Shown: positions 9,526-63,325, counted from the stretch's first letter. The stretch: 64,000 bases of DNA from Macrostomum lignano (GCA_002269645.1 NIVC01000716.1:269426-333425); one strand, 5' to 3'. The notes: generated by a model from the sequence alone, not told the origin. Numbers and translations are program-made.

Positions 9526-10079
9526 CAACACTGAATTCTTCCTCGGCTGGGCTCAGTTAAAGTAAAAATCTCTCTCCCCACGCGCGCTCTCTCTACCCCC
9601 ATATCTTTCAAAAGTCTTCCCAATTCCTTGTGAGGAGCGCACAAAATAAACCCTGCTTCCAAGGCCCCACCCTCTCTGCCTGTGCACCCGCCCTCTCTCC
9701 CTATGCACCCGCCCTCGCCGCCAACCCCCAACCCCAACTTTGTCTTTCCAAAAATAACAGCTTTAACTAGCTTCCGAGCGATCGATTCCCTCCGCCCGCT
9801 TGAAGTCCCCATGCTGTCTAATCTCCTAAGCATTTCTTTGTCCCAGCGATTCTTCTCCTCTGGAAAATCCTTATACTTAACGTCGTGCCACATGCAGACA
9901 GAGTCTAGCTCGTTCACAGGCTCATGCCCAGGATTTGGATTATTGTTTTTATCTAACTGTATTTCAAGTGGATTCAAAGGCCCGCAATATTTGTAGCCGG
10001 GAACTGTCCAGCCTTTGTTTGGATGAGGAAGCTTTTCTATTAGTCCATGTGAATCTAAGTTACCACCACAGCGTTGCAT
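9525..10079 (-). CDS. Parvovirus-like phospholipase A2 domain protein (Polinton-1)
   Basis: PGYKYCGPLN calcium loop, PVNELD and catalytic WHD. Confidence 0.85.
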   Translation of the reverse strand: MQRCGGNLDSHGLIEKLPHPNKGWTVPGYKYCGPLNPLEIQLDKNNNPNPGHEPVNELDSVCMWHDVKYKDFPEEKNRWDKEMLRRLDSMGTSSGRRESIARKLVKAVIFGKTKLGLGVGGEGGCIGREGGCTGREGGALEAGFILCAPHKELGRLLKDMGVERARVGREIFTLTEPSRGRIQC

Positions 10080-44310: not shown

Positions 44311-44799
44311 ATGCAGCGCTCTGGTGGTAAAATAGATTCACATGGACTGATAGAAAAGCTTCCTCATCCAAACAAAGGCTGGACACTTCCCGGCTATAAA
44401 TATTTCGGGCCTTTGAATCCACTTGAAATACAGTTAGATAAAAACAATAATCCACATCCTGGGCATGAGCCTGTGAACGAGCTAGACTCTGTCTGCATGT
44501 GGCACGACGTTAAGTATAGAGATTTTCCAGAGGAGAAGAATCGCTGGGACAAAGAAATGCTCAGGAGACTCGACAATATGGGGATTTCAAGCGGGTGGAA
44601 GGAATCGATCGCTCGGAAATTAGTCAAGGCGGTTATTTTTGGTAAGAAAAAGCTGGGGTTGGGGGTCGGCGGTGAGGGCGGGTGCATAGGGAGAGGGGGC
44701 GGGTGCACGGGGTGCTCGGGAACAGGGTTTATTTTGTGTGCTCCAAACGAGGAACTAGGCAGACTGCTGAAAGATATGGGGGTAGAGAGAGACGCTTGA
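44311..44799 (+). CDS. Parvovirus-like PLA2 domain protein (intron-less)
   Basis: PGYKYFGPLN, PVNELD, WHD. Confidence 0.85.
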   Translation: MQRSGGKIDSHGLIEKLPHPNKGWTLPGYKYFGPLNPLEIQLDKNNNPHPGHEPVNELDSVCMWHDVKYRDFPEEKNRWDKEMLRRLDNMGISSGWKESIARKLVKAVIFGKKKLGLGVGGEGGCIGRGGGCTGCSGTGFILCAPNEELGRLLKDMGVERDA

Positions 44800-47255: not shown

Positions 47256-49329
47256 CCCACCATATTCATGTGTCTCTGTGAAGACATTTGAATCTAGACA
47301 AATCAGTTGCCAAATTTTCTTAAACTGCAGAGTAACTAGAGCGTGCCACCTGGATGCCTGTGGCCAGACTATCCAGGAGATCTTGCTCATCACTGGGCAA
47401 AAGTGTGAGCGGACTGTTAAGCGCTACTTATCGAGGCGTCGTGATCGCAGTTTGTATAGGGCATCTCTGGCTGTGGATCAGGCGCTGAATCATACAGTTT
47501 CCGAAACTAATGTCATTAAGATTGTTAAGCTAGCTCGTCCAAAATCCAATCACAATAAGCGAGGCTACGATGGAGGAATGTGCGGATGTTTATCAAGAGC
47601 CTGTCCAGACCGACGGTGCACTACGTGTTCAGGCTGCTCCGTCTGCTCTCTCTCTCTGGGTCGTATGTAGTCCAAGAGTGTTTTCTCAATGTCCGCAAAC
47701 GACAGGTCGGCTACAAGTCGTGGGGACACGAGATCTTGCAATTTTTCAAGTGCAGTCAGACCGCAGCAAGCTAGGAAATTGTCGGCTAGGAAAAGCTAGG
47801 AAAAAATCTAGAAAACACGGACTCTACTCCGCCCCATAGGTAGCCGACATGAGGAAGCGAATATAAATAGCGAGCGCCCGCAAGGGGGGGGGGACACGCT
47901 CTCCAACCCACCCCCACGGCCGACCCAAACCCCCAGCAAATCACAGCCGCAGCGAATCACAGCGCAGGGCGAGAGAAATAATCAGCAAACAAGCCCGGCT
48001 TAAGCCACCGGCTGCGGCATACGCACGAAAAAAATTAGATGCGAAAAAGGGTGACTCTGTGTGGGCAGGGTGTAGTTGCACCACAAAATTGCACGCCACA
48101 ACAATAAGAAGGCACTTTTGAGGCCATAGACAAATTAATGGTGATCCGAGAGGATGGGTGCCTAATTAATCTCGGCAAACCAGCGTTTTACATGTAGAAC
48201 AATGGCGCTCGCCAGACAATAGTTGTCACGCACTGGGACCGGTGATTCTTTGGATTGTTATGCTGCTTGACAATCCTACAAACAATGCATTGTATATAGT
48301 AACGCATTGTTCTGCACAAAAATGTGAATAATGATCGTCAAATTGCTAGACAATGAGTTTTTTGTCTTGGTGGCAATTTTGTGAGATGTGATATATGTAC
48401 TGTAGAAATGAAAAGACCGATGGTCCGCCAAACTATTTTGGAGCTGAGGCTCAAGCGAGACGCTAACAAAACGAAAAGCGTAAACCGTACACAGGGCTAA
48501 AAGCTCTCTCGATGATATATATATTGCAGTCAGTCAGAATCAGCCAGCGTGGAGGGGGGTGGGTGAGATGGGCCTGGGCTAAATCGGCGTACATAGAAAA
48601 TTGAATAATAAACACGTACGTACATTAAATCACGCAGTGGAATTGGAAAGAAAATCAATGCTACTAATCTACCTCCCAAACATACCCCCACCTTAGCATG
48701 ACAATGACAAAAACTATTCGAGGGATGAAACAATAAAAACGAATACGGTATTAGGAAAATATTCGAAAACGATGCGTGATGCAAAATCAAACTCAAAAAG
48801 CCAAAAAGCAACGTTGCATGAAAAATAATGGCGACATTGTGACGGGTAGAAAATTAGAGCTAAAGACGATAAGTACGCAGATCGTAGATACAATCGAAAA
48901 TTTTGCAAAAGTGCGTCAGCTATCAAGACAGATTTCCAAATTAAATACGAAAGAAAATTACCGCCACCAGCAACCGCAACTGAAGCAAAAACTGAAACAA
49001 AAATTGTAAGCATTGGGCTATCAAAAGGTCGTTACTAGTGCAAAAACGATGGAACTTCTAAGCGCGGAAAATAAAGCAATATTAAGTAGAGCTCAAAGAA
49101 TGCAAACATCGCTCGTAAAAAACTCAAAAAACACAAAAGATAAACTTGCCGACAAATTCACTAAACCGTAACGACTGCTGTTCAGCAAAATTCACGCAAG
49201 AAAATAAATAGCTAAATAATGAATGTTAATCGCGTTGAACACTGAAAACGAAAATTGGGTTAAGACGGGTGAAGCCTTATTCATATTTTAAGTATAGCAG
49301 CCAGCTACTTCGCTGAAAAAATATACGCG

Positions 49330-49896
49330 CTGCATGCATCTACAATCTCTTCCTAACTCGGCATCTTGCATTCGTCTTCGTTACTACGAAAAGTACAACA
49401 TGGCGACGAGGAAAATTAAAGTCGCCGCGGAACGATACTGCAGTCACCAAATCTTCATCCCGATGTCTTCCGGACTCGACTTCCGACTGGGGGAGATGCC
49501 GCTGTGCTACCCCGATGTCGAACAGTATTTCAAGCGCCTCGGTTTTTACATTAGCGCAACGGAAAAGAATGACCAGAGCAAAGCCGTTCTACTTGCTACT
49601 TGTGGAGATGCCGCATTTTCACTGATTGAAACAGTTGTGCAGCAGAAATCGCTCCTTCGGAATTCGGTGTAGTGTTCTTCGAAAGGCGGAATGATATCAA
49701 CACCTTCTCACATTCGGAACCTATGTCATTACTGTTCTGCTTCAGAGTCACTAGGATCCTGCTAGGATCCTGCAAGAGTGGAAGCTCTATCCAACTTGTC
49801 AGAGCCAAAAGACCGGGATCAATTGAGAAGTGCTATATGCACCTTAAGACACTACGGGATTTTTTGTCGGAACTTCTCTATGATCGCCAAGCCGCT
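49330..49896 (+). mobile_element. Degenerate Gypsy element (LTR end, PBS, gag and pol scraps)
   Basis: ...ACAACA followed by PBS-like TGGCGACGAGG at 49401; gag VEQYFKRL...VLLATCG; RT/RNase H scrap FCRNFSMIAKPL, cut at 49896. Confidence 0.65.
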
Positions 49897-50417
49897 AGTA
49901 GTAGTATGTTATAAGGGGTTGCGCCACACTTTATTGCTCGGGCGCATTGCGCGCCAGCTCGCTGGATGACTCAACCCCTTATAACATACTACTACTACCA
50001 GGAGGTCATGGGTTCATGTGGGGTGTGATAAATATAAAAATATATAAATATACATATATCTGTGACTGAGGGTGTTGAGGGTGAGGGCATGTGGGGGCAT
50101 TGGCCTGTGGTATATTTCTCAGAACACCGATTTTTCAGAATTTTTATACTTTTAAAAAGGGGGGTGCCCTCGCCCTCATGCCCTCACTCATTTTGAAAAT
50201 CACTAAAAATAAGTGAAAAATGACTAAAACAGGTGAAAATGGTCTGAAAACAGCGATTTTTGTGATTTTCAAAAATTTTGAAAAAGTGCAATTTTCACGA
50301 TTCCAGCTCTAAAACCATAAGAAAAGTTGGATCCTCGGGTCAATTTAATGCAATTTCAGGTATATACAATATGAAAGTGTCATCTAATTTAACGATAGTA
50401 AATTTTATATATATAAA

Positions 50418-52640
50418 ATGGCCTTCAGTAAACCATTATTTCTAGGAAATGCTTTAGATATTCAGTCAGCTATAACAAAACTACCACCCATCTTCGCCAC
50501 TTGAAAATATCCTGGCGAATTTCATATTCCAGGGTATTCTTTTGCAGGTTACGTAGTGGCCTGAGTGAGGAAGTCAATGTCCTTGCTAGTCATCAAATAA
50601 GCACTTGTTAACTTTTCTAAAGTAAAAATGGAGCAAACAATTCGAAAAATCCTTCTGAAACCAATTGATGATAAGGTTGGGCATGATCAAATTCTTCATG
50701 ATCTTTTTCAAGAAGAGTTAATAATTTCACACAAGATTAAAGTTATTCAAATGAGACTAGGCAGACTATATGAAATTTTGGATTCGAGAAGGTAAAAAAG
50801 ATAGACCTGGTTCACGTTGAGCGAAAGATTGCATTAGAGCTTAAATCTTCTGATAACACGGACAATTCATCAAGTCGTGAAAGGAATTATCAGAAACTAT
50901 TAGACTATAAAAATTCTTATCCCACCTATCAGTTGTATTATGTATGCATCAATAATACTACAAAGGAACCTAAGAATATTTTACTAGACAATGGAATCAC
51001 CCTTATAACAGGAGAATTTGCATTGAAATTTCTTTATGGTGATCAATACAAAAAAATTATAACCAACATTAAACAAGTGCTTAGTGATTGGCGACACCTT
51101 CAAATTGCGGGAACTCCGTCCGATTCTAGTACGTCAATAACAGCCTCAAGTACCACTTCAGTTGAGAAATCTTCTGAAGGAACACAGGTAATTCCTGTTC
51201 CCAATCGGACTTCGTCCGCGAACCTATGGTTCGATGGTAACAAGCTTGAGGACATGGTGGAAATCCGCAGCCAAGCTCCTAAGTCCGAACGAAGTTGACA
51301 AGGATATGGAGAAGGTTCAGAGACTTAATGGGGGTGGGGCTGAAGGATCTGGTCAATCCTGATGAAGCCTTAAGATAAAGTCCAGCCTCTTTCGAAAGAT
51401 TGAGGAACAACTGCCGGGTACAAATTTAGACAAGAGACTCAATCCAATTACAGACCGGCCTCGGTATGACAGTCTACCAATTAACCCAATCGATTGGACT
51501 GCTTACTATCATGACAAAAACTATAGAGATGCTGAAAACACTTCTTCAAATCCAGAGGAAGCTCTAGCAAAGAAGCATATAGCTGATGAAAAAATGATAG
51601 CTGATTTAGATGCTATTCCAACCAGTGACTTGTCTGTGAAAGAGAGACTCATTCGAAATCTAGTAAAGCGTATTATCAAGGCTAAAGTTCGGTTTGGATT
51701 AGGCATTCATACTCACAACCCCAACAATTGTATAGACTGTCTAACAATTTATGGTAAGGGTCTTAGCTATGAAGATGCAGTAAAATTGCATAAAGAATAT
51801 CGAAAGCCAAGAGTATTTAGAAAAATGATTCACTATGCAAAAGACACAATTTGGCATGCAGATATCATTATCCTACCGCCCGAAAGAGGTTACAAATATG
51901 CTCTAACTATCATAGATGGTTTTACACGTTACGCCTGGGCAGTTCCTTTGAAAACAAAGACGGGAGCGGACGTTGCAGAAGCTTTCCAAAAAGTATTTAA
52001 GGAATCAGGAAGACGATCAGAGAGACTTTGTGTAGATGAAGGCAAGGAGTTTTATAATCAGCATATGTACAAGCTATACTCGTTTTCAAAAGACAACATT
52101 AGAAAGAAGGATGAAAGGGGTGAATATATTAACAAGATGTTTTCAATTTATGGCGAGTCCAAGAATGCAATGATTGAGAGGTTCAATCGTACTCTCACAA
52201 ATAAACTCTGGTTTGAATATGATCTACAGGGTAATCAGAAGTGGCTCCACAAATTGCCAGCTATTATTGAAAAATACAACAACACAATCCATTCTGAGAT
52301 TCTGATAACTCCTTCAGAAGCATCTAAACATCCTGAGCGAGTACCAAAGCCAACTTTCGAGTATTCAAATGAGAAACCAAACTTCAAAGTAGGTGACAAA
52401 GTTCATATCTATAGATATAAGGAGCACTTTGAAAAGGGTCGAAGAGGATATTGGAAAATTTCAGAAGTGTTTAGGATAAAGAAAATAGTTTACTCCAATC
52501 CCATAACCTACATTATTGAGGATGAGAATGGAGAAGAAATCATTGGATCATTTTACAAATCCCAGCTTCTACCAGCAAATTTTTCAACTAAAAATGAGCG
52601 CCTATCGAACAAACTGCAAACGGGCGAAAGGTCAGATTGA
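50418..52640 (+). CDS. PLA2-integrase fusion gene interrupted by a group I intron (exons 50418-50549 and 51414-52640; in-frame TGA at 50502)
   Basis: Exon joining gives HIPGYSFAG|PGTNLDKRL...PINPID...YYHD, then in-frame rve core (HADII, VDEGKEF, IERFNRTL). Confidence 0.85.
50550..51413 (+). ncRNA. Group I intron, subgroup IC1-like ribozyme (864 nt)
   Basis: 5' exon ends in U and pairs with IGS GCCUG (50559-63). P AAATTGCGGGAA 51102-13, Q AATCCGCAGC 51262-71, R GTTCAGAGACTTAAT 51315-29, S AAGATAAAGTCC 51372-83. Terminal G at 51413. Confidence 0.93.
50628..51298 (+). pseudogene. Intron-encoded PD-(D/E)XK restriction-endonuclease-like protein (one frameshift at ~50775-50790)
   Basis: QMRLGRLYE...IDLVHVERKIALELKSSDNTDNSSS...YQKL. 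Looped out by an 11-bp stem (50599-609 with 51072-82). Confidence 0.7.
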
Positions 52641-53016
52641 AACGTCTGATTCACAACTACTAGCTGATAAAGAGGGTGAAGGAATTGGTGATATGATCAG
52701 TGGTGTCACAAACTTTTTATCAAATCATGGAAGTAAAATTGTGAGTGGAGCTGATGCAATAGGTAAAACAGCTACCACAGCGAAGAACATATTCGATGCG
52801 AAGAAATCATACAGTGACATGTCTAAAGCAGGTGAGGATCTGGAATATATTAGAAAGAAACGTAGAGATAAAGAAGCAAAGAAAAGAATGGAAGAAGAGC
52901 AACAGATAGCTTCTCAATCAAATAAGGCTATTCAAGATATTGTTAAAAAGGCTCTAGGAACAGCAGAACAGTCTCAAGTGTCTTTGAGACAAGGCAATGG
53001 TTTGAAGAAATTCTGA
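52594..53016 (+). CDS. Small amphipathic virion-type protein
   Basis: GEGIGDMISGVTNFLSNHGSKI; positional and motif homolog of 35507. Confidence 0.6.
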   Translation: MSAYRTNCKRAKGQIETSDSQLLADKEGEGIGDMISGVTNFLSNHGSKIVSGADAIGKTATTAKNIFDAKKSYSDMSKAGEDLEYIRKKRRDKEAKKRMEEEQQIASQSNKAIQDIVKKALGTAEQSQVSLRQGNGLKKF

Positions 53017-53024
53017 CCTTAAAA

Positions 53025-53294
53025 ATGAGCGAGAAAAACACTGAAGCAAGACTCAATCGATATGTTCGAGAGGGAAAACCAAGATATGTTACTGTAAATA
53101 AGCAAAAGAAATATCTTTCTAAAGAGAAGATTCGAAAACTGCAAGAGAAACAGAAAGAACATGAAGGTGGAATAATTCCTCTATTAGGCTTACTACTAGC
53201 AATTTTGGGTGGTATCGGAGCAGCCTCAGGAGTTGGTACAATGATTGCAAAAGTGTTAATACAGCCAACAATGCTAAACATAATAAGACAATAG
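53025..53294 (+). CDS. pX(mu)-like protein, possibly frameshifted near its end
   Basis: Basic N-terminus followed by GGIIPLLGLLLAILGGIGAASG. Confidence 0.55.
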   Translation: MSEKNTEARLNRYVREGKPRYVTVNKQKKYLSKEKIRKLQEKQKEHEGGIIPLLGLLLAILGGIGAASGVGTMIAKVLIQPTMLNIIRQ

Positions 53295-53421
53295 AAGTCG
53301 AACAAGTACCCAGCGAAGCAGTCAAGTGGCTGCTAAAGACGTTTAAAGTTGAAAAGGAGAAACAGGGTAATGGGATAATTCTTAGACCTCATGAAGCTTA
53401 GTTGAAATTTCTCTTATAAAA

Positions 53422-54727
53422 ATGGAGAACAAAAAGAATATACTGAGCATATATGAGGACAAAACTTTTAGCTTTTTCAAAAAGAAAGAAGACTATATTA
53501 AGATTTCTCCAACTCCAGGTAGCACTAATAATCTCAATGTTGCAGGAGGTCAAATAGTTCATGAAGTCAATTCAACAGAGTCATACATTCTCATGTCAGA
53601 GGCATTCGGTTGTATAAAATACTCAATAACACAACGAGATAACACCGACTTGAATACGAACATTACTCTAGAACATAATTGGCCTATGAGACTTTTCTCT
53701 CAACTCATTGTTGACATTGGAGGAACAAAGAAAGTCTATAATGATCCTGGAGAGTATGACACAATCTTAAAGTCCGTAATGTACTCAAAATTAATGAATG
53801 AAGTTGGAGAAGCATACGGATGGATTCCAGACACTGGAGATGCTGGGACTGTTTCTGATATACCTCTAGCAAACAACGCAGATGCTGAAGCTGTGAGAAC
53901 TGCAGCAATCGCTATGAAAAATAGACTCAATAAGAAGGATTCGAATACTGGATACATTAGGAGGCTTGAAAATTATAACAATGTCACTAATGCTCCAAAC
54001 AGAGGTGGAACAATCAAACTATCATTAACACCTCTCATTGGTGTGAAACGATGCTGAAATTTTCTTTGGAGCTGCCGGGACGGAAGCTAAGTTAACTATT
54101 AATAGCTTTGAGATTTGGATCCCTGCTATTACTTTGTCACCCAGTGCTGAAGCAGCTTTTCTAAAATCACTCAACAAGGACATTACAGTATCATTTCCAG
54201 AGAGGGTAACGGTTCCACCACAACTCATTCAAGGAAGTCCATATACATGGAACATAGCCAACATCTCCAATATGCCACTTGCAATCTTTGTAGCTTTCAA
54301 ATATGACGTAAACAACCCATCATATATAGTTAATGATCACAAGTATGTGTCTTACAAAACGGGAGCAAATGCAGTGAAAATAACCCAGCTTCAAGTCAGA
54401 TTAAATCAGGTGATGTATCCGAATGATTATGTTGAAATTGATCCAGTAGCTCAAGACATTCACAGAGCGTATGAAATGTACGAAGACATCTGCAGCCGTT
54501 TCGGTGTAACTCCTCCATTCAATAAACAAGACTTTCTAACCATCTATCCAATCTTTTGCTTTGATCTAACAGCTCAAGATGAGTTTCTGGTCAAGAGTGG
54601 AGTGAATATTCAATTATTTATCAAGAAGTCAACAAATGTTGAGCTGACTGCTTTTGCACTAATTCTTGAACAAACAAAGAATGTAATAAAAGTTACCAGT
54701 GAATATCAAATGACCCGCGTCGAATAA
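53422..54727 (+). pseudogene. Major capsid protein, frameshift/deletion at ~54040
   Basis: KISP..S.NNLN..GQIV, ITLEHNWPMRLFSQ, NDPGEYDTI, YPIFCFDL. Confidence 0.85.
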
Positions 54728-54748
54728 GGTCATTTTTTCTTTTTTTAA

Positions 54749-55522
54749 ATGCCCAAAGTAAAATTTCAGCATGATCCTATTTTCCCTAATCCTCTTTTAT
54801 GTTGTATTATCGGCGCTACAAATACGGGTAAAACATATTTACTATTCCATATTCTTACAAGTCCTGAAAAACTAGTTGACTTTAATGAGTTAGTTTTATA
54901 TGTTCCCAGAGCATCTCAAATGGATCCAGAGTATCAGTTTCTAAAATATGGCTTTGAAAATGGTCTCCCACCTTCTCTTATCAACTCACTCTATCATGTC
55001 TACCAGGTGAGTGAGGATGCATCTCCTGAAGATATTAGACATATTTGTCGAGAGGCAGCCAACCCTGGTCGAGTGCAAAGCACATCAGAAAATTCAGAAG
55101 TAATAGAGAAAATTCCTGTCACTCTTTACCATACTCCAAATGAAGAAATTTTTCATAATGGACTAAAGACATGTGTGATATTGGACGATGTTTTGGGAGA
55201 GGCTAATCAAACATTTCAGGAAAGTCTGTTTCAGAGAGGCAGGCATGGAAACTGTTGTGGTTTTTATCTAGCTCAAAATTTTACCAAACTAGATCGCAAT
55301 ACTGTCAGGGAGAATACGACATGTTACATAATCTTTAAACAAAAAGATACAAACTTGAATCACATTGCTAGAAATATAGAAACGAATTATGAACCCGCTA
55401 TATTCAAGGCTAAATGTAGAGAGGCTTGGAAAAAGAAGTATGGCTATATCTATATAAATACAAGAGCTGATGAGGATGAGCAAGATTTGTATAAGGATGT
55501 TCTAACTAAAATCCCATTGTAA
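54749..55522 (+). CDS. A32/FtsK-like packaging ATPase
   Basis: GATNTGKT, VILDD, RGRHGN. Confidence 0.93.
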   Translation: MPKVKFQHDPIFPNPLLCCIIGATNTGKTYLLFHILTSPEKLVDFNELVLYVPRASQMDPEYQFLKYGFENGLPPSLINSLYHVYQVSEDASPEDIRHICREAANPGRVQSTSENSEVIEKIPVTLYHTPNEEIFHNGLKTCVILDDVLGEANQTFQESLFQRGRHGNCCGFYLAQNFTKLDRNTVRENTTCYIIFKQKDTNLNHIARNIETNYEPAIFKAKCREAWKKKYGYIYINTRADEDEQDLYKDVLTKIPL

Positions 55523-55524
55523 AA

Positions 55525-56255
55525 ATGACTAATGAATATATAAGAGAACTCATTAATTTAGCAAAGCAGCGAGAAACGTACAAATCCAGAAATGATGCTC
55601 AACGCTATTTGAAAATTGGAGAAGAGAGTTTATATGCAAGAGTGGCTCCATTAGCTCAAAAACCTGTCACAGAAAAGCTCGATGAATTTATTGATGTCAA
55701 TGCCAACCTTGTTGATAAACTTCAGAATCAAAAAGTTCCAGTTCCGCAATCAAGTACACCAAAAGGACGATTTGAACCTCTGGAAGTATTTGACAAAATA
55801 ATTGAAGAAATTGGAAAGATTCCAATAACTCAAAGACCAGCGCCTAGTATACGAATTCAAAAAACTGATGCTGGATATATATTTGGATCATCTGTAATAG
55901 ATGTTGAATTCCATGAACAAGGTCGAGACATCATTGTCAACGAATTTCGAATGCCATTTTCTGAAGATCTTGAAGAGTTGTTCAAAATGCCTAAAGTAAC
56001 TGAAAATGGTGAAGAGCTGAAGCAATTCAAGATGCAAACATTGCAGGATTATGTTAACCTCATTGAACATTGTAAAAATCCAGCGGCCAAATCAAGTGGG
56101 ATTATAAGCAAGCAGTAAGGATATTGAAAGATAATCCACCAGGATATCGAGTAAAACCGGGATCTGGACTCAGTGAAAGAGTGTTGACATTACTAGCCGC
56201 AAAAGCAGAGGGACATAACAATGTTGATAAAGAGCTAGCAGAATTACTTGCTTAA
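55525..56255 (+). pseudogene. Homolog of the Gln-rich Polinton protein, frameshift near 56100
   Basis: Shifted tail GSGLSERVLTLLAAKAEGHNNVDKEL matches the C-terminal motif of 21803 and 34345. Confidence 0.6.
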
Positions 56256-56257
56256 AA

Positions 56258-57049
56258 ATGGAAAAAGAAATAGAAAAAGTCAACATCCTCTTGAGTAAAA
56301 AGTTTCAACGCACATTTGACTTCTTTTCAATTAAAAACCCATTTCGACAAACTCTAGGCACTCCTATAAATTTGTATGAAGATCGAGAATACGAAGCTGG
56401 TATAAAAAAGTTTGCAGTCTTTGATGCTATTAACAATATTGAAGGAGGCAATAATGAGTTGCGATACTCGAGGGATAGTGTTAGAACATGGAAAAAGTTA
56501 AAGATTCAAGCAGGGTCATGGGAAGTTAAAAGTCTGTCAAGCGAGATTCAAAGATTGCTAACAGCTGCAAATGATTGGAAAGAGGGGGCTATTGTTTTCA
56601 GTGCAAGCCTAGACACGCGTAGAGTTAAGTTACGGTTAGCCACAGATTATCAAGTTGATTTCAGGGATGCACATTCCAATAACTTTAGAAGACTGTTGGG
56701 ATTCAATTCGGAAGTGTATTTGAAACCATTTGAGAGAGCTCCAAATCCAGCTCGGATAGACGGAGCTAGAAGTGCGATCATGGTTCGTTGTCTAAATATC
56801 AAATGGGGGTTTATCACTGATCCAGCTAATGGAAATCATTTAATTGATAAGCAAATACTTCTTTCAATTCCATCGTTCTCTGTCCCAATGGGAAGTAAAA
56901 TTATTCAAGAGCCCGCAAATCCTGTGTACATACCACTAACTACAAACATGTTGAGCACATTCGACTTTGTCATCGAAGATGAGTCTGGTGTTCTATACGA
57001 CTTTGATGGCGAGGAAATATTTATAAATCTTCACATACGACAAAAATGA
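56258..57049 (+). CDS. Minor capsid (penton) protein
   Basis: LGTPINL, NNIEGGNNELRY, GSWEV, YDFDGEEIFINL. Confidence 0.85.
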   Translation: MEKEIEKVNILLSKKFQRTFDFFSIKNPFRQTLGTPINLYEDREYEAGIKKFAVFDAINNIEGGNNELRYSRDSVRTWKKLKIQAGSWEVKSLSSEIQRLLTAANDWKEGAIVFSASLDTRRVKLRLATDYQVDFRDAHSNNFRRLLGFNSEVYLKPFERAPNPARIDGARSAIMVRCLNIKWGFITDPANGNHLIDKQILLSIPSFSVPMGSKIIQEPANPVYIPLTTNMLSTFDFVIEDESGVLYDFDGEEIFINLHIRQK

Positions 57050-57477
57050 GCGAAGCTGAGACATGGAATGCATTTAAACAAAAGTTTGGGACTGACACTA
57101 CGACTAATATTGATCTGATAAATTGGGCAAAATATCTCAAGTTAAAACCATTTCGCTATGCCATGAGAGATGACATTGTTGACTTACCACAGTATGGTTA
57201 CTTTATGACAAATATTCACACTTCGAAAGAACGGGGTATACATCATTCAGCTATATTTTCAGCTCCTGATAAGGTTTATTTTTTTGATTCCTATGCACTA
57301 CCGCCCACACTGGAAATTATGGAAAAGTTTAATCACACAAAGAATAGAATATGTGGAGACATGGAAGAACAAATTCAAACTTTTGATAAGAAATTTTGTG
57401 GTCAAATGTCGCTGTACTTTTTACACCGAATCGATAAAGGAGATAGCTATAATGAAATTTTGCAGCAATTAAAATGA
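57046..57477 (+). CDS. Adenain-like cysteine protease
   Basis: GIHHSA, YFFDSY, QIQ...KFCG. Confidence 0.9.
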   Translation: MSEAETWNAFKQKFGTDTTTNIDLINWAKYLKLKPFRYAMRDDIVDLPQYGYFMTNIHTSKERGIHHSAIFSAPDKVYFFDSYALPPTLEIMEKFNHTKNRICGDMEEQIQTFDKKFCGQMSLYFLHRIDKGDSYNEILQQLK

Positions 57478-58883
57478 GTTACAAGAATACTGCCAATCAA
57501 TTTGGTTACTCGTCAAATTCAAATGATATAGCACCTGGAATAACAATAGCGTTAGCTGATGATCGATACATCAATGAAAATGAAGGATATAAGAGAGAGG
57601 AAATAGATAATTTATTGTTAGCAAAGAGAAATGTTTCAGACTCTTATTCAAAGGAAGATAGTGACGCAATGAATATCACCATGCTACAATTAATTGACGA
57701 TGCTCATGGGCGCGTAAACAATGTCTACACAAAAACCGAAACTGACACTAAGATGTATTCTAAAACCGAAATTGACACTAAGATGTATTCTAAAACTGAG
57801 ATTGACACTAAGATGTATTCTAAAACTGAGATTGACACTTTGTTAGCAGAAAGGCAAGGTACTGCGGGAGGTACAGAGAGTTCGAAATTAGTCAATATTC
57901 TTTCATTACTGACTTCAAACGCTTCCCATCCTGACATGAAAGTGACCGCTTCTCATAACTCTTCAGCAGCATATCATGTTGCAGATTCAAACCCAGCTTC
58001 AGAATGGAGCAGTGTAGATGACTCAGACAAGTGGATACGAGTTCAATTTCTGAAAAGAGCTAGGAAAGTTGTAGAGATAAAGTTGGAAGGAGAGGTGTGG
58101 CCTGGTTGGTCTGTTAGTGTGAGCCTAAATGGAACAAACTGGACACCTGTTGAACAAAGTGCACCCATTGAACTACGAAGAGGCAATGCACATCTTAGGA
58201 AAAAAATACCTAATCCCTCATATTATTTTCATTATTCTCTTAATTTTTCTGGTTCCGTAAAGCTTACAAAAGTTGAATTACTTGAGAGACAAACAGTGGT
58301 TAATGATTTAGTGTGGCCTATAGATAGACTTCAAGCTGTACCAAAGCTATACGTAGACAATGCACTTGAATCAGTGGAGCTGCGACTAAGGCGGGGACTA
58401 GGTTTCAAATCTTATACAGGATATATTCCCCCACTAGCAACACGTCAAAACTATAGAGAAAGGGGTTTCAATGTAGCGTCATCAGGAGCATTTGAAACGT
58501 CAGATAATTGGGGTTATGTAGTATCTAATTCAGAATGGGCATCGAGGAATGAACCCAATTCTTACATTGAAGTACAACTTCCCGAGTCCATTCGAATTTG
58601 GAAATTCGGGTTAAAAGGAACCAAAGCAGTGGGTAGTGAAATTATAAAAAATCAACCAAAAATTTTTATTCTGAAAGGAAGCAATAACAACAGAGACTTT
58701 AAGAATATTTTTTCTACCGAAAACTCTGGTTTAGTTCCTGGAGTGATGAAGTATTTCGAAGTAGCTTCCACCGAAAAATTCTCTGTTTATAGAGTGCATA
58801 TTAATTCAACCACTGAAGGATCAACTGTTCTTATAGTTTCAGGCTTTCAACTTTATCCGATTTTAGACATAATCGCCACATAA
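57474..58883 (+). CDS. Fibre/spike-like protein with YSKTEID repeats and two discoidin (F5/8-like) domains
   Basis: DDRYIN anchor, 10-aa repeats at 57725-57840, and two ASS...EW.S...WI.V...F.L.GS..G..W-type modules. Confidence 0.65.
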   Translation: MSYKNTANQFGYSSNSNDIAPGITIALADDRYINENEGYKREEIDNLLLAKRNVSDSYSKEDSDAMNITMLQLIDDAHGRVNNVYTKTETDTKMYSKTEIDTKMYSKTEIDTKMYSKTEIDTLLAERQGTAGGTESSKLVNILSLLTSNASHPDMKVTASHNSSAAYHVADSNPASEWSSVDDSDKWIRVQFLKRARKVVEIKLEGEVWPGWSVSVSLNGTNWTPVEQSAPIELRRGNAHLRKKIPNPSYYFHYSLNFSGSVKLTKVELLERQTVVNDLVWPIDRLQAVPKLYVDNALESVELRLRRGLGFKSYTGYIPPLATRQNYRERGFNVASSGAFETSDNWGYVVSNSEWASRNEPNSYIEVQLPESIRIWKFGLKGTKAVGSEIIKNQPKIFILKGSNNNRDFKNIFSTENSGLVPGVMKYFEVASTEKFSVYRVHINSTTEGSTVLIVSGFQLYPILDIIAT

Positions 58884-58884
58884 A

Positions 58885-59655
58885 AATGAATGAAAAAATG
58901 AACACATCTATCCTGTGGTTGAGCTGCATGAAGCAGATTTGAGGGAGCGGGACTATTTCAATCAGAGAAAGGGTGAAATCAAAGGCAGTATTGAATGCAT
59001 TACTAAAGATCTTACAATTTATAGCAAAAAAGTAAACAAGTACAAACGACAAAATAGCAGGATAAATTGGATCAACATTGTGACAGGAAATGTAAGTCTC
59101 TTGGCTGCTACAGGAATTGGCATAGCAACATCGATACTGACATTGAATCCCTTAGTTATTGGAGTAGTAATCGGGGCAATGAGTGGTTTTGAAGCTGTAA
59201 AATCCACGTCGTTGTTTGCAACTGTGAAAATTCATTGCCAAAAGCAGAAGGCAAAATACATTTTTCTCAGAGATCTGGCAAATCAATACAGAGAGAGATT
59301 GAGATTGTATATTTACTCCCAAAAAGCAGTTGATGATTATAGATTAACTCTTGAAGAGGTTCAAGCAGCTGCTGCAATTTATTCAGAATACAGAGAGAAA
59401 AGAGACCAATTGTTAGACGCCTGTGTTGCGCCTGAAGAAGTTAACCATTCGGAAGTCGTTGATAAAATCCTCAAAGAGAGTAGACTTGGTAATTCAGCGA
59501 AGGAAAAAATTAAAAAGGAACTTCTGGAGAAAGATCTGAGAGAAAAATTAGGTCTAGCTGATAAGCCAAAAGAGTACTCGGCAACACTCAATCTTCAATC
59601 AAATGCTCCAAGTGCACCCCCCCTATGCTTGAGTCTGTTTAATTTTTTTTCTTAA
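58885..59655 (+). CDS. Conserved membrane-hairpin protein
   Basis: Basic helix, two hydrophobic helices, AVDDYRLTLEE; homolog of 37673. Confidence 0.65.
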
Positions 59656-59657
59656 AA

Positions 59658-62120
59658 ATGGAAAGGAAAATACCAGCGGCCTCTTATGAATTTGATCTCG
59701 ACTCCGTTGAAGAAATTCGCGGTTTAATCTCCCCAATTCTTTCCGAATATTTGATGGCTAGAGATTCAATAAAATACAGAATTTCCTTTGTCGCAGAATT
59801 TTATAAAGGAACTACCGACAGTTGGATTGAGTTCCAATATCATTCAAAGTATCGAACTTTGTTAAATCTTCTCCAAGTGGAAACTAGTATAGAAAGTACA
59901 ATTCAGGATGTTCTGGATGAATTCGATGGATGGAAGGATAGTTTTAATGAAAGGGGATCAGGATATTATTTTGTTAAGTTAGTAAAGATTGTGTTGAAAG
60001 TTGTTGGCATTAATCAGTTGAAAGGAGGAACTTATATTCCAATTACAATTAAATCAAACGCATTAGTAAATGTTAAGAACACTACAGACAATAGGTGCTT
60101 TCTCTGGTCTATTTTAGCAAAGCTCCATCCTGTGAAGGAACATAGATATAGAGTTGGTAAGTATACACAGTATATAAATGAAATAAACTTAGGAGACGTT
60201 GAATTTCCAGTGGACATTCGAGATATCTCTGAGATTGAAAAGTTGAACAGTCTTCATATAAATGTGTTTGGATTAAGGGATATAAATACTAAAGAGTCAA
60301 TATATTCTATTCGTCTGACAGAAGATTACGACAACCCCAATGTTATTGATTTACTACTTGTCAAAAATTATTATTGTTTAATAACAGACTTGTGTTTATT
60401 CCTCACGTCCCAAAATTACAACAGGGTTTTTCTTTGTCGAAAGTGTCTTCAAGTTAAATACTCCCAGGATGCACTGGATAATCATAAAGCAATCTGTACT
60501 GACTTCAAAGTGTCAATTGAAGTTCCAAAGATTGATAAGAGGATATTAAAGTTTAAAAACTACCACATAAGTGTAAGAAAACCATTTGTGTTTTATGCAA
60601 TATTAGATTATGTAACGATGGATGATAAATCACTAGAGCTATCACAATGGACACTTTTTACTAGTTCCGACTATGAGGACATTATAAAATCAGATATTAT
60701 TTCAAATACTACAGTGGAATCATTCGTTGAAACCGTAATCAAAAAGTTTGAGCATATAAAAAATGAAATGGATAGATATAAACATCCAAGTTTAAGTGAT
60801 CTCGATGAGACTGATTACAAAGCGGCAGAACAATGTTTTCTCTGCTCAAGGCCATTTGTAAATAGTAAAAAAATTCGAGAGCATAATCACTACAATGGTA
60901 AATATCGCGGCGCAGCATGTCAATCATGTAATACCAAGGATGGCAAGGCGAATCAAACGGTACCGTTGTTTCTCCTGAATGAATCTGGAAAAGATATAAA
61001 CTATTTGATAGTTCCATTAACACGAATAAAGAATACAGCGTATAAATTGGATTTCATTTCTAAAACATCGGAAGACCATGTTGCAATTAAGTGAGGGAAT
61101 TATACCAGTGGTGTTGTGTTTTTAGATGGATCTAGGTTTTTGGAACCACCATTTACACTCTCTGAAGAAGAAATAAAATATTTGCCACCCAGTGATACAA
61201 CGGCAGTAATTAGAAAGATTTACTCATTTGTCAACGCTTTTGAGAAGTTTCGATCAACATTTTTGAAATATTTCAAGATAGATCCTGCGTATTGCTTTTC
61301 CCTTTCTGGATTATCGTGGGCATGTGGGTTGAAATATACCAATGTTGAGCTGGAATTACTTGGTGATAAAGATATGATATCCGTGGTAGAAAGTGGTATT
61401 CGCGGCGGTTTCTCTGGAGTTCTTGGAGATCGATATAAAAAAATGAACAATAAGTATTTAGAAAATTATGACAGCAATTCTGAATCGTCGTACATGTTAT
61501 AATTGGACAAGAATAATTTATATGGTGAAGCAATGATGAAAAATCTACCTGTGCGAGATTTCAAGTTTGAAAATGATCTAGAGTATCACAAGAATATTCC
61601 TAATGACAGGGGTTGTTTTCTTGAAGTTGACCTTCAATATACAGAGGAATGTAAGAAAGCTACAAGTAAATATCCACTGGCTCCTGAGAAACGAACAACT
61701 AGATTTGAGGATTTATCTGACATACAGAAGCAATACCTCGAAGTCGAAAAGAAAAAGTTTGTTCAATCCAAGTTGATGTTGACATTTTACAACAGTGATG
61801 CAATATCTCAGTGTTTATTCTCAGTGATTATAATTCTCAGTGATTACTCAGGATGTTTATGAGGATCTTGAAAAAATTAAAGAACACTTAGACACATCGG
61901 ATTATCCAAGAGAGCATCCACTATACTCCGAGACGAACAAGAAAGTCATTGGAAAGTTGAAAGATGAAATGAATGGCTCAATAATTTCCGAAGCTGTATT
62001 CCTGCGGTCAAAGGAGTATGCTTTCACTACAGTTTCAGGGGAGTGTGTTACGATCAAGGGGGTTGATAAAAGCAGTACAAATATAAAGTTTGAAACATTT
62101 AAAAACATACTATTGACAGA
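59658..62120 (+). pseudogene. pPolB of Polinton-3, fragmented and 3'-truncated
   Basis: ERGSGY, CFLWSIL, EHNHYNGKYRGAACQSCN, GIRGGFS, NNLYGEAM, VIGKLKDE, LRSKEY. Confidence 0.92.
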
Positions 62121-62963
62121 TTACAATTTCATTGTTAGTAAACCTCTCTTTGAACAAAGTAGTTACCTGTTTGAGTTTGTTGGCTCTTTGTATTGAATTT
62201 ATATTCTTCATTGTACTCTGTAGTTTCTTTTCAAGTGCTTTTAACTTCTCTTTATCATCAGCCGCCTTCTTAATTGCAATTTCGAGTCTAGTCTTTCGGT
62301 GGTTTAACTCACTGCTAACAAGATTTGATATTTTAAGAAATATGTCATTTATACTACTTAGTTCTCTCCACTTATCATCATCAAAATAGTAAATACCATC
62401 GCTATTGTAAATTATATTATTCTTCTTATATTCATAAACAAAGTTGGTTATGTTAACGTCAGTGAAATTATCATCAAGATACTCAATCCTACCATAGTAA
62501 TCATATTTGCTTTTCCATTCCTTATATTTGTTATAGTTTTCTTTACTTGCCCATTTCTTTAGTGTACCGATAGTAAGTCTGTCCTGTGCATCAGCAGAGC
62601 TGGCACTGGTGCTATTCCACTCCTTTTTACATGATTCGGAATCGAACTTATCATCATAATTTACTTTTGACCAATCAGTGAATACTTTGTACATTTCATC
62701 ACCACTGCCTATGTCGCGGAGTATAAGTGCTACCTTGTACCAAGAATCATAGTCTTGGTTTTTGTGTTGTATTATACTTAACAACTTTGAAACTCCTTCA
62801 CAAGTGGGTGGTGGAACGGTGCTTTTTAGTGCCTGTTTATCGGGTTCTTGGTTTTCTTTTTTATCCTGTGGCTCAATTAATCTATTTATCTCTTCAAGAA
62901 CTACAACTGGCATGTCTATTAACCTTTCGGGCTTTATACGTTTGTATTCCCTAATTTCACCAT
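62120..62963 (-). pseudogene. D5-like primase/helicase fragment (PriCT-2-type domain), truncated at both ends
   Basis: DYDSWYKVALIL...FTDWSK...KFD..SCKKEWNS...LTIGTLKKWA matches the PriCT-2 pattern. Confidence 0.75.
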
Positions 62964-63325
62964 AGTAGAAGGCGTGAGGGGGCTTTTGGGACAAAATTTT
63001 TCACATCCTCCATAATCCCATTAAATCCATCTATATTATCCCCGACAGAATCAGAAAAAAGGGGGGTCGCACTCGCTCACAAAACATCCTCCATAATCCC
63101 ATTAAATCCATCCATATTATCCCTGACAGAATCAGAGCATAACAGGTGTCCTACTGTTATGCTCTGAGGGTTTATGCTCTGAGCATAATCCACTAACATC
63201 CACCCATAGCATCTTCGAAACAATCAGAAAAGAATCTGCATTCTTCTCCCCACATTCAATCCGCAATGTGCTACCACATCCCAAAGACTTTAAATCATCA
63301 GAGCAGGGTCCTTACCCTTTGAAAA
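62964..63325 (+). repeat. Left TIR of a fourth Polinton (Polinton-1/2 family)
   Basis: AGTAGAAGGCGTGAGGGGGCTTTTGGGAC and the same subrepeats as 8384 and 31445; not followed by the family's genes within the window. Confidence 0.88.

Follow-up and report, generated by a model that had tools for sequence, protein, structure and literature searches.

Polinton-3, a Polinton-like element in Macrostomum lignano DNA, and its relatives in public assemblies have been almost completely purged of the five-base word GGNCC and of the dipeptide Gly-Pro, and the Gly-Pro codons of their PLA2 motif are the insertion point of a group I intron that encodes a nuclease of the Eco47II family. We consider it probable (about 0.7) that this clade carries a methylase-free, restriction-type homing endonuclease and protects itself by avoiding GGNCC.

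Within the window (the whole 64,000-nt stretch of DNA analysed), Polinton-3 occupies the right part, and its membership of the Polinton-like elements follows from the joint presence of a double jelly-roll capsid (PF21738), an A32-like ATPase (PF04665) and an rve integrase (PF00665) (Table 1). A palindrome comparable to that at its left end lies at ~215-365 in the relative L001, 5' of exon 1. We found no inverted repeat pairing the left end of Polinton-3 with its right end, which is truncated. The exon 1 translation ends ...HIPGYSFAG and aligns collinearly both with exon 1 of L001, which is intact, and with P0013, an intron-less homologue; exon 2, which matches the Pfam families rve (E 3.5e-10) and Phospholip_A2_4 (E 9e-4), shares 79% identity with P0012 and 74% with P0013. 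The capsid gene is split into two ORF pieces in different frames, where relatives encode the protein in one gene (419-451 aa). Counterparts of the four ORFs that follow the ATPase, one of which (57474-58883) has an F5/8 type C domain (Pfam PF00754), are present in the relative L144 with equal sizes and order. The large replication-gene ORF, earlier named pPolB, is broken by two in-frame stops and at least one frameshift; it is homologous to an 882-aa ORF of Polinton-1 (E 2e-30) with the same Endonuclease_7 insert, the only Pfam match obtained, and neither a Pfam polymerase profile nor a PDB entry matched it. The PriCT_2 ORF lacks its 5' part at the right edge of the element, where the mechanical ORF enters the neighbouring terminal repeat. 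Since the nuclease is frameshifted and several other genes are broken, nothing is active at this locus: the window copy is an inactive, decayed and truncated relic.

Table 1 Features of Polinton-3 and comparator sites, in coordinates of the window.
Feature	Position	Strand	Basis and state
Comparator GGGCC, PLA2 Gly-Pro of Polinton-1	9979..9983	-	exact count
Comparator GGGCC, PLA2 Gly-Pro of Polinton-2	44407..44411	+	exact count
Left-end palindrome, 31-nt arms, 40-nt spacer	49896..49997	.	inverted repeat I7
Polinton-3, decayed right-truncated Polinton-like element	49897..62963	+	rve integrase, double jelly-roll capsid, A32-like ATPase; 0 GGNCC
Exon 1 of PLA2-integrase gene, last codon Gly GGT 50547-50549	50418..50549	+	one in-frame stop: broken
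Group I intron, 864 nt, inside split GGNCC (GGT/intron/CCG)	50550..51413	+	Rfam RF00028
Intron ORF, Eco47II-family PD-(D/E)XK endonuclease	50628..51298	+	PF09553; one frameshift: broken
Exon 2, remaining PLA2 domain (PGTNLDKR...HDxxY) and rve integrase fusion	51414..52640	+	frame intact
Major capsid protein, double jelly roll	53422..54727	+	PF21738 DJR-like_dom, E 9e-7; broken, at least one frameshift
A32-like packaging ATPase	54749..55522	+	PF04665, E 8e-6; intact
Four more intact ORFs (56258-57049, 57046-57477, 57474-58883, 58915-59655)	56258..59655	+	ORF list
Large replication-gene ORF with Endonuclease_7 insert	59658..62196	+	PF02945, E 3e-7
PriCT_2 (primase C-terminal) ORF fragment	62110..62963	-	PF08707, E 1e-11
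Polinton-1/2-type terminal inverted repeat, neighbour truncating Polinton-3	62964..63133	.	94% complementary to 47086-47255

An exact count gave 81 GGNCC for the window and none within 49897-62963; the interval free of it runs from 48570 to 63307 (14.7 kb), and the second-largest gap in the window measures 3.8 kb. Markov models of order 0, 1, 2 and 3 predict 13.9, 13.7, 12.1 and 7.3 occurrences for 49897-62963, and none of 2000 dinucleotide-preserving shuffles came out at zero (mean 13.8, minimum 4). Among 136 XXNYY and 224 palindromic patterns GGNCC was the most extreme outlier (p 1e-6 to 6e-6, against ~3e-3 for the runner-up). Both halves of the motif are missing (GGWCC, 0 versus 8-9 expected; GGSCC, 0 versus 4-5), while GGCC (10) and CCNGG (17) stand at normal counts. 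These figures bear out a preliminary description of the same DNA, which had claimed that GGNCC is lacking over ~13 kb, that CCNGG occurs about 17 times (exactly so, at the positions it gave), and that GGNCC is present in Polinton-1/2 and the fourth terminal inverted repeat (8811, 9979, 12375, 44407 and, for the last, 63307), including the homologous PLA2 Gly-Pro codons. The region bounds and the motif were picked only after the sequence had been read and, the sequence being heterogeneous, simple Markov nulls yield small p-values for other words too.

The rest of the window served as a control, with 31 GGNCC observed versus 35 expected in Polinton-1, 20 versus 31 in Polinton-2 and 26 versus 30-32 in the left flank. 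The first of these counts also bears on the idea that the nuclease responsible is encoded not by the intron ORF but by the Endonuclease VII-like insert of the large replication gene; although the ORF beginning at 59658 does match PF02945, the homologous Polinton-1 ORF contains the insert as well in an element with nearly its full complement of sites, which makes the idea scarcely credible.

The avoidance extends to protein sequence. Gly-Pro codons always read GGN-CCN, so synonymous change cannot abolish a GGNCC located there. Gly-Pro was absent from the coding stretches of Polinton-3 (0 versus 6.7 expected), as had been claimed for its ORFs, and occurred once in the proteins of relatives, versus 21.6 expected; the reversed dipeptide, Pro-Gly, was found 9 and 27 times, respectively. 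When the Polinton-3 proteins were held fixed and synonymous codons shuffled, a mean of 5.3 GGNCC was obtained, with P(0) = 0.0036.

The intron interrupts the PLA2-integrase gene precisely at the junction of two PLA2-motif codons, GGT (Gly) and CCG (Pro). Its RF00028 core (51025-51404) scores 91 bits versus a gathering score of 50 (E 1.4e-22), and those of the relatives L063, L001 and L144 score 80.6, 65.3 and 59.4 bits. The P1 helix pairs exon CAGGU (50545-50549) with GCCUG (50559-50563), placing a U.G pair at the splice site, and the final base, G 51413, acts as omega-G. Six intron-bearing sequences (the window, L001, L063, L144, L150 and L151) share one insertion point, and in all six the splice boundaries are the same, the intron ends in G directly 5' of CCN, and all five P1 pairs form, with U.G each time and one compensatory change from C-G to U-A. 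The intron length is a multiple of three, and exons 1 and 2 are in one frame. We therefore assign the intron to group I and predict it to be self-splicing.

Natural intron-less homologues (P0013/L143, L147 and L149) read unbroken ...GYSFAGPGTNLDKRLNP... across this point, and the intron-less alleles L143, L147, L149 and L145 have GGGCC or GGCCC at it. The intron-bearing L144 and the intron-less L147, which come from the same sample and have different flanks, are 98.4% identical over 9.6 kb. It had been proposed that the intron hides the sole Gly-Pro site of the element. The split itself, GGT/intron/CCG, is as described; the masking is better understood as a consequence of homing, because on the simplest view the intron sits in GGNCC because its nuclease cuts there.

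The ORF within the intron, the tail of which overlaps the ribozyme core, was identified as an Eco47II-family nuclease by the match of its longer stop-free part to PF09553 (RE_Eco47II; 27.4 bits versus a curated cut-off of 25.9, E 3e-6). It shares 48-62% identity with the intact metagenomic proteins P0001-P0011 (136-233 aa), and PF09553 is a precomputed annotation of P0004, P0005, P0007-P0009 and of the L149 ORF. Residues D65, E76 and K78 are invariant in nine intact relatives and present in the window copy and in homologues from giant viruses, with which the motif around the catalytic E-x-K is also shared. An AlphaFold model of P0001 has pLDDT ~90 over residues 1-166 and ~30 in the tail, and among PDB folds EcoO109I (1wte, E 4.5e-5, probability 1.00) matched the modelled intact relative best, followed by other PD-(D/E)XK nucleases. 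Eco47II homologues have been described as cutting GGNCC (PMC10305163), while EcoO109I cuts RG/GNCCY and AvaII G/GWCC (PMC7337904). Family membership, the fold neighbour, the intron insertion site and the avoidance of GGNCC lend indirect support to GGNCC as the presumed specificity of the intron nuclease. A short recognition site, as the preliminary description had suggested, is further argued for by the genome-wide lack of a five-base word combined with a single-domain protein of ~165 aa. With four specified bases such an enzyme would shred host DNA, and would therefore demand tightly restricted expression. Several features expected of a homing endonuclease are present, namely an ORF in a group I intron, presence/absence polymorphism and an intact target in the intron-less allele; nuclease activity and homing, like any role in competition, are inferred.

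The description of the system as methylase-free also held up. No Pfam methylase was detected among the Polinton-3 ORFs, and tblastn searches with two giant-virus C5 methylases against the window and nine related loci gave nothing at E<=0.05. We therefore do not classify it among the type II restriction-modification systems. In metagenome bins of giant viruses (Nucleocytoviricota), where homologues of the nuclease at 30-46% identity are common, the free-standing gene adjoined a C5 methylase in ten out of ten loci checked. The intron gene may plausibly have come from, or be sister to, a giant-virus nuclease gene. GGNCC counts in giant viruses themselves are mixed, ranging from depleted to over-represented. 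These systems are of the chlorovirus restriction-modification type, in which the virus is protected by its methylase; the Polinton-like clade has neither methylase nor sites.

To assess replication, relatives were fetched from public assemblies with GGNCC fixed in advance as the motif. Eight pooled sequences (71 kb, window included) contained 3 GGNCC versus 38 (order 1) or 28 (order 2) expected, and 58 CCNGG versus 39-43 expected; ten relatives without the window (64 kb) had 3 GGNCC versus 27 or 19. All three surviving sites are the PLA2 Gly-Pro of intron-less copies. The low-GC relatives are expected to hold merely 2-5 GGNCC apiece and are therefore convincing only when pooled. AAWTT, AGNCT and GANTC likewise gave small p-values in the pooled relatives under simple Markov models, at a 0.4-0.75-fold depletion versus ~0.1-fold for GGNCC. 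In contrast, the outgroup Polintons without the nuclease (L154 and Polinton-1/2) have normal GGNCC counts, with 11 observed versus 16 expected and three Gly-Pro in L154, and the host flanks of L144, L147, L148 and L145 contain 7-12 GGNCC apiece. The claim that the element has been purged of its own targets, made for Polinton-3, can therefore be extended to its relatives, which are likewise depleted of GGNCC and Gly-Pro.

This replication decides against chance, and against base composition or codon usage as an incidental cause in one AT-rich 13-kb element. The post hoc choice of bounds and motif, an order-3 expectation of only 7.3 and the small p-values of other words lend such an explanation some initial appeal; the dinucleotide shuffles, the codon-shuffle and the dipeptide tests nonetheless reject it, and the multiple-testing worry is removed because diverged relatives, examined for a motif fixed beforehand, reproduce the absence and retain sites only at the intron insertion point. 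We regard it as refuted, and its residual probability as negligible. Mutational decay, in which GGNCC cytosines methylated by a giant-virus or host enzyme are lost by deamination like vertebrate CpG, is very improbable as well. Although C5 methylases do accompany the giant-virus homologues, the expected products show no surplus (GGNCT/AGNCC reaches 0.40 of expectation, GGNTC/GANCC 0.92), the loss is complete and extends to Gly-Pro in conserved proteins, where it took a change of amino acid, and host flanks and co-resident Polintons of the same genomes are not depleted.

The nuclease gene lies in the intron in the six sequences named above and is free-standing in L148, L149 and L153. In L148 and L153 it is found just upstream of the PLA2-integrase gene, in which the PLA2 Gly-Pro is replaced by Gly-Ala and Gly-Val, respectively, and neither sequence has a single GGNCC. 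The free-standing homologue in L149 is intact but distant, and L149 nonetheless keeps GGGCC at the PLA2 site. L147, L145 and L143 have no intron and no nuclease gene in the retrieved sequence, and are as depleted as the carriers. Depletion in intron-less relatives, named beforehand as an outcome that would tell against the proposal, was thus observed in L147, L145, L149 and L143, so the purge characterizes the clade as a whole, whether or not a member now carries the intron. The nuclease explanation survives because the intron is polymorphic at 98% identity and other members carry the gene free-standing.

As present carriage is not required, the selection could come from a GGNCC nuclease external to these elements. 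The purge would then have been imposed on unmethylated elements by Eco47II-like restriction-modification systems of giant viruses, and the intron nuclease would be a long-site homing endonuclease whose position is a by-product. The abundance of methylase-paired homologues in giant viruses fits this account, as do the depleted copies in which no nuclease gene was retrieved and the site that L149 retains despite its homologue. However, most of the purged lineages sampled have the nuclease gene, and the unpurged L154 and Polinton-1/2 do not; a folded protein of ~165 aa with no extra DNA-binding domain leaves little room for recognition of a long asymmetric site; and GGNCC is the sole palindrome essentially absent, where assorted giant-virus systems should have marked several sites. 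We therefore judge this account unlikely as a replacement for selection by the clade's own nuclease. The two are compatible, and an external giant-virus system as driver is a live alternative.

In the own-nuclease reading that we favour, the Polinton-3 clade carries a restriction-type, Eco47II-family endonuclease without a methyltransferase, placed, in the window and at least five relatives, in a mobile group I intron in the middle of GGNCC, at the Gly and Pro codons of the PLA2 calcium-loop motif. A small dimeric PD-(D/E)XK enzyme would cleave plain GGNCC, and clade genomes with extra sites would fall prey to their own enzyme or to a co-infecting relative's, so that selection would strip all GGNCC through synonymous changes and loss of Gly-Pro from the proteome. 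The PLA2 Gly-Pro, kept for function, would be the last remaining site and hence the homing site: an intron-less allele, once cut, would be repaired from an intron-bearing one and acquire the intron, which would split the site (GGU/intron/CCN) and render the carrier fully resistant. Other members would have reached the same end with Gly-Ala or Gly-Val in place of Gly-Pro, beside a free-standing nuclease gene. DNA rich in unmethylated GGNCC, whether from the host, Polinton-1/2-like elements or unmodified viruses, would be a substrate. More tentatively, and at somewhat less than even odds, the nuclease may have a dual use, in intron homing and as a weapon against the GGNCC-containing DNA of competing Polintons, unmodified viruses and the host, with immunity gained by rewriting genome and proteome, the last gap closed by the intron or by Gly-Ala/Gly-Val, and the gene exchanged with giant-virus restriction-modification systems. 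Intron loss might then be costly, and co-resident Polintons might suffer interference, as the preliminary description had envisaged.

Several known systems share parts of this arrangement. The bacterial, GGNCC-specific type IIP systems of the Eco47II/Sau96I type have a nuclease of the same PF09553 family with the same PD-(D/E)XK residues, and the recognition sequence of the Eco47II family is both the word avoided and the intron insertion site in the Polinton clade (PMC10305163; PMC3424549); a 2012 survey of PD-(D/E)XK proteins gives the family as bacterial (PMC3424549). Unlike these systems, the clade has no methylase, belongs to the eukaryotic virus-like elements, places the gene in a group I intron and would be protected by site absence instead of modification. 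EcoO109I (1WTE/1WTD) and AvaII (6G3B) read a GGNCC core and cut to leave a 3-nt 5' overhang (PMC7337904). The intron nuclease homologue shares only 13-14% identity with them, at TM-scores of 0.45-0.51, and its sequence-profile match to AvaII was not significant (E 0.88); furthermore, the clade avoids all GGNCC, beyond RGGNCCY or GGWCC.

Another parallel is I-Ssp6803I, a PD-(D/E)XK homing endonuclease of a group I intron. Such enzymes have in common with the Polinton nuclease a restriction-like fold, a mobile group I intron and the interruption of their own target in conserved coding sequence. They differ in sequence family and in having long, rare sites with no known genome-wide avoidance in carriers, whereas the footprint in the Polinton clade implies that the site is five bases long, four of them specified. 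The I-Bth0305I family (PMC3239194) serves for comparison, with reviews in PMC3943268 and PMC3384342. In phage and prokaryote genomes, selection is known to remove short palindromic targets of type II enzymes (PMC6286503, PMC4687349). In those cases the source of the enzyme is the host or a competitor; in the Polinton clade the depleted lineage itself carries it, and the avoidance is total, down to the loss of a dipeptide at the protein level. Finally, RF00028 introns have been reported in genes of protist Polinton-like viruses from Paulinella micropora, Desmodesmus and Rhodomonas lacustris, in a survey that leaves the intron proteins unannotated and gives no nuclease family, target site or site avoidance (PMC12220804).

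The findings presented here add giant viruses and Polinton-like elements to the bacterial range of the Eco47II family, and connect group I introns of Polinton-like viruses with a nuclease and a target that can be identified. What defines a homing endonuclease is its long, rare target; what defines a restriction enzyme is the methylase that partners it. In the Polinton-3 clade, an enzyme of a restriction family appears to serve as a homing endonuclease with a five-base target and no methylase, at the price, for its carrier, of purging the site genome-wide and of removing even one dipeptide from all proteins. This would be a clean natural example of a DNA-level conflict shaping protein sequence, and the absence of GGNCC and Gly-Pro, combined with a PLA2 Gly-Pro that is split or mutated, provides a sequence-only marker by which that conflict may be traced in public assemblies.

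Exact counting found 81 GGNCC sites in the 64-kb window and none between positions 48570 and 63307, a gap of 14.7 kb that is the largest in the window (the second largest is 3.8 kb) and that bears out the preliminary description, in which about 13 kb of Polinton-3 had been reported free of this motif. Within Polinton-3 itself (49897-62963) there are 0 GGNCC and exactly 17 copies of the mirror motif CCNGG, the number previously estimated by eye. Both nulls proposed in that description as a check predict sites where none is observed: 7.3-13.9 under Markov models built on the composition of the region itself (13.9, 13.7, 12.1 and 7.3 at orders 0, 1, 2 and 3) and 5.3 under a synonymous-codon shuffle that keeps the proteins constant (P(0) = 0.0036). 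In 2000 dinucleotide-preserving shuffles of the region the motif occurred 13.8 times on average and never fewer than 4 times. When 136 XXNYY words and 224 palindromic patterns were compared, it led all other outliers in the region by about three orders of magnitude; neither GGWCC nor GGSCC is present, and the frequencies of GGCC and CCNGG are ordinary. The dipeptide Gly-Pro, earlier said to be missing from the Polinton-3 ORFs, occurs 0 times in 3,835 codons against 6.7 expected, with nine Pro-Gly. Avoidance can therefore be seen at synonymous positions and also at the level of the protein sequence. The co-resident elements do contain GGNCC, as had been noted, and are not purged (Polinton-1, 31 observed against 35 expected; Polinton-2, 20 against 31), nor is the left flank of the window (26 against 30-32), where another integrase fragment is the sole content seen. 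Were the loss of GGNCC a decay driven by methylation, its deamination products should have accumulated; they are not in excess, and this explanation is therefore disfavoured.

The genes and other features of Polinton-3 are collected in the table, together with those of related loci from public assemblies (L-handles). This copy of the element is decayed, with one in-frame stop in exon 1 of the PLA2-integrase gene, one frameshift in the intron ORF, at least one frameshift in the capsid gene, and two in-frame stops plus at least one frameshift in the large replication ORF. An exact-protein look-up with the window's ATPase returned no match. The polymerase label of the large replication ORF found no support in profile or PDB searches; this ORF is homologous to its counterpart in Polinton-1 (26% identity, E 2e-30), neither of the two matched polymerase profiles, and both hold an Endonuclease VII-like (PF02945) Cys-rich insert. 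That insert was considered as a cause of the purge and ruled out, because Polinton-1 carries it and is nevertheless unpurged.

Coordinates of features in the window and in related loci (window positions unless a locus is named)
Feature	Position	Remarks
Palindrome, left end of Polinton-3	49896-49997	102 nt
Corresponding palindrome, L001	about 215-365	
PLA2-integrase, Polinton-3		parvovirus-type PLA2 domain fused to rve integrase
Last codon of exon 1 (GGT)	50547-50549	
Group I intron	50550-51413	864 nt
Intron nuclease ORF	50628-51298	continues into ribozyme core
Rfam group I match	51025-51404	
First codon of exon 2 (CCG)	51414	frame unchanged
Double jelly-roll capsid protein, Polinton-3		
A32-like ATPase, Polinton-3		
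Further ORFs, several, Polinton-3		without assigned family
Large replication ORF, Polinton-3	59658-61094	carries Endonuclease_7 insert
Large replication ORF, Polinton-1	12298-14946	
PriCT_2 fragment, Polinton-3		strand opposite to other genes; 5' part missing
TAAAAATGG, Polinton-3	50623-50631, 53417-53425, 56253-56261, 59653-59661	
30-nt tandem repeat, Polinton-3	57732-57839	within F5/8-type-C ORF
Fourth terminal repeat, Polinton-1/2 type	62964-63133	cuts right end of Polinton-3 at 62964; counterpart 47086-47255
Tandem array, Polinton-2	45015-45458	period ~83 nt; CCNGG at regular spacing
Free-standing nuclease gene, L148	9441-9974	directly upstream of PLA2-integrase gene
Free-standing nuclease gene, L153	393-920	directly upstream of PLA2-integrase gene
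PLA2 GGGCC, L149	3511	Gly-Pro codons
Eco47II-family ORF, L149	8135-8722 (-)	intact, distant; beside ATPase gene
Nuclease + C5 methylase, L003, L005, L008, L013, L019, L023, L043, L064, L083, L116	about 9.4-11.9 kb in each	giant-virus loci

Several structural features accompany these genes. Polinton-1 and Polinton-2 form a large inverted pair, with arms as long as 1.5 kb that are 97-99% identical, and a terminal repeat of their type adjoins and truncates Polinton-3. The long palindrome, which starts (G)TAGTAG... and lies a few hundred bases 5' of exon 1 both here and in the relative L001, may form a terminus or have a part in replication. Five copies of the word TAAAAATGG are present in the window against 1.1 expected; the four inside Polinton-3 overlap the start codons of the intron nuclease, the capsid gene, ORF 56258 and the large replication ORF, the other ORF starts being mostly (T)AAAAATG. 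The same context lies 5' of the nuclease ORF in five relatives (L144, L063, L150, L151 and L153). It resembles a promoter or initiator motif common to these ORFs, and as such would supply the intron ORF with its own expression signal.

The PLA2-integrase gene is interrupted by the one group I intron that Rfam detects in the entire window (91 bits, gathering score 50, E 1.4e-22). Exon 1 ends with ...HIPGYSFAG and the protein resumes at PGTNLDKR..., so that a would-be GGTCC is split; the intron of the preliminary description thus does divide the one Gly-Pro GGNCC, and its type is group I. These bounds were set by natural intron-less homologues, which give a Gly|Pro junction; one of them, the metagenomic protein P0013 (74% identical), reads ...HIPGYSFAGPGTNLDKRLNP... 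uninterrupted. All comparators were natural intact and intron-less homologues, none of them spliced, repaired or frame-joined artificially. The same junction ruled out a canonical GT...AG splice pair and a splice end at the end of the Rfam model, which would give Gly-Glu-Gln-Leu-Pro. In P1, exon CAGGU pairs with GCCUG, which lies ten bases inside the intron; the splice site has the canonical U.G, and the final base of the intron is G. All six related introns examined have the same exon pairing, U.G and final G, one of them with a compensatory change from C-G to U-A. A P10 pairing with the 3' exon was not conserved and was left out of the evidence.

The longer stop-free part of the intron ORF matches Pfam PF09553 (RE_Eco47II) above the curated cut-off, and 11 metagenomic proteins (136-233 aa, 48-62% identical) represent its uninterrupted form, from which the window copy differs by its one frameshift. 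The catalytic D...E-x-K is invariant in the family members aligned. An AlphaFold model of one intact relative, P0001, is confident over residues 1-166 and has a disordered tail (residues 167-233), whose coding sequence overlaps the ribozyme core; the apparent protein conservation in this tail (HLQIAGTPS...) coincides with conserved intron RNA. The closest PDB match of the predicted fold is EcoO109I with its cognate DNA (E 4.5e-5, probability 1.00), an enzyme that recognises RG/GNCCY, its relative AvaII recognising G/GWCC (PMC7337904). GGNCC cleavage has been ascribed to Eco47II homologues (PMC10305163), and PF09553 has been classed as a bacterial family of the PD-(D/E)XK superfamily (PMC3424549). 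Both the profile match and the nearest fold agree with the earlier proposal that the element carries a nuclease of short-site type; its enzymatic specificity, its activity and any role in competition we infer.

To follow the purge beyond this copy, relatives were drawn from ENA, JGI and Logan contigs, with the GGNCC motif set before any of them was inspected. Dozens of copies are present in the ENA samples from which L144, L147, L148, L145 and L149 were taken. The nearest, L001 (integrase 79% identical), reproduces the Polinton-3 layout of palindrome, intact exon 1, intron with intact nuclease ORF and exon 2, and has 0 GGNCC and 7-8 CCNGG in 4.7 kb. In L144 the integrase is only 46% identical, a distance at which DNA changes with respect to the window have reached saturation, and the intron and an intact nuclease sit at the same codon boundary; seven GGNCC lie in its host flank and none in 12 kb of element. 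Its intron went undetected at the Rfam gathering threshold in a 44-kb batch and scored 59.4 bits in a local search. The short intron-bearing contigs L063, L150 and L151/L152 likewise have zero GGNCC. L147 is the L144 element without the intron, 98.4% identical over 9.6 kb, from the same sample and with a different genomic flank, and its sole GGNCC lies at the PLA2 Gly-Pro codons. Identity between the two is only 92-95% in exon 1 and immediately 5' of it, against 98.4% downstream, which could reflect a co-conversion or recombination tract. The intron-less L145, L149 and L143 (a 1.6-kb fragment) also retain a single GGNCC each, again at the PLA2 site. Compared with L144, the L149 element has undergone rearrangement. 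In L148 and L153, where the nuclease gene is free-standing, there is no GGNCC at all and the Gly-Pro of the PLA2 motif is replaced by Gly-Ala and Gly-Val, respectively; these appear to be resistant forms of the site next to the nuclease gene.

In a pool of eight sequences, the window among them (71 kb in all), 3 GGNCC were counted where 38 or 28 were expected, and 58 CCNGG where 39-43 were expected; the relatives alone (n=10, 64 kb) gave 3 GGNCC against 27 or 19. Gly-Pro, expected 21.6 times in their proteins, occurs there once, at the PLA2 site; Pro-Gly occurs 27 times. The outgroup L154, which has the PLA2-integrase without a nuclease gene, has three Gly-Pro and 11 GGNCC (16 expected), and an IMG/VR scan with the integrase alignment found a single distant locus, unpurged. 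The comparison of intron-bearing with intron-less relatives envisaged in the preliminary description thus replicated the purge but revealed it to be clade-wide, with the intron-less L147, L145, L149 and L143 included. Other words deviate too: relative to the order-1 expectation, GGNCT/AGNCC stands at 0.40 and GGNTC/GANCC at 0.92 in a clade pool of Polinton-3, L001, L144, L148, L149 and L145, and AGNCT and GANTC are moderately low in the relatives. Relaxed specificity, other restriction pressures or null-model misfit are possible reasons.

Methyltransferase profiles matched none of the Polinton-3 ORFs, and tblastn with two giant-virus C5 methylases gave nothing significant in the window or nine related loci, in line with the earlier view of the system as methylase-free. 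Giant-virus metagenome bins contain many nuclease genes distantly related to this one, at 30-46% identity. There the genes are free-standing, no group I intron being found in the eight nuclease loci searched, and a convergent C5 cytosine methylase adjoins the nuclease in 10 of 10 loci examined; some of these methylases are extended by a C2H2 zinc finger or carry a Rho_N-like N-terminus. Neighbour-joining placed the giant-virus nucleases in one clade, whose sister clade unites the intron-type enzymes with that of L153, the L148 and L149 enzymes being more divergent; the residues surrounding the catalytic E-x-K hardly differ between intron-type, free-standing and giant-virus enzymes. GGNCC counts in the giant-virus loci are mixed and were not taken as evidence on specificity. 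Some loci combine an excess of GGNCC with a near absence of CCNGG (L064, 67 GGNCC against 26 expected and 4 CCNGG against 26; L116, 99 against 58 and 6 against 64), and others lack both words (L019, L083, L108). Such sharp differences in short palindromes, seen when L064, L116, L023 and L025 are contrasted with L019, L083, L049, L050 and L108, suggest several different restriction pressures.

In the main rival explanation, GGNCC restriction systems of giant viruses impose avoidance from outside, and such pressure may also contribute. This rival is less able to explain why most lineages sampled in the purged clade have the nuclease gene and the unpurged outgroups have none, and why this palindrome alone has been essentially eliminated. 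The simplest account is that a restriction-type enzyme, presumably active and specific for GGNCC, circulates in the clade without a methylase, and in its core the earlier model is supported. Genomes of the clade would survive by carrying no GGNCC sites; the PLA2 Gly-Pro, functionally retained, would be the last target left, so that the intron would home there and its insertion would split the site, some lineages having mutated it instead. The intron had previously been thought to mask this site; insertion does split it, but its position is best explained by homing and not by concealment selected for. L149, with its intact distant homologue and retained PLA2 site, is not explained by this model.

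In the literature searched we found no description of an Eco47II-family nuclease within an intron, or of GGNCC or Gly-Pro avoidance in Polintons. Group I introns have been recorded in Polinton-like viruses with their proteins unannotated (PMC12220804), restriction-site avoidance has been treated in general work (PMC6286503, PMC4687349), and the homing endonuclease families have been reviewed (PMC3943268, PMC3384342, PMC6083498). Homing endonucleases and restriction avoidance are kinds already known, and we rate the Polinton-3 system as a variant of both.
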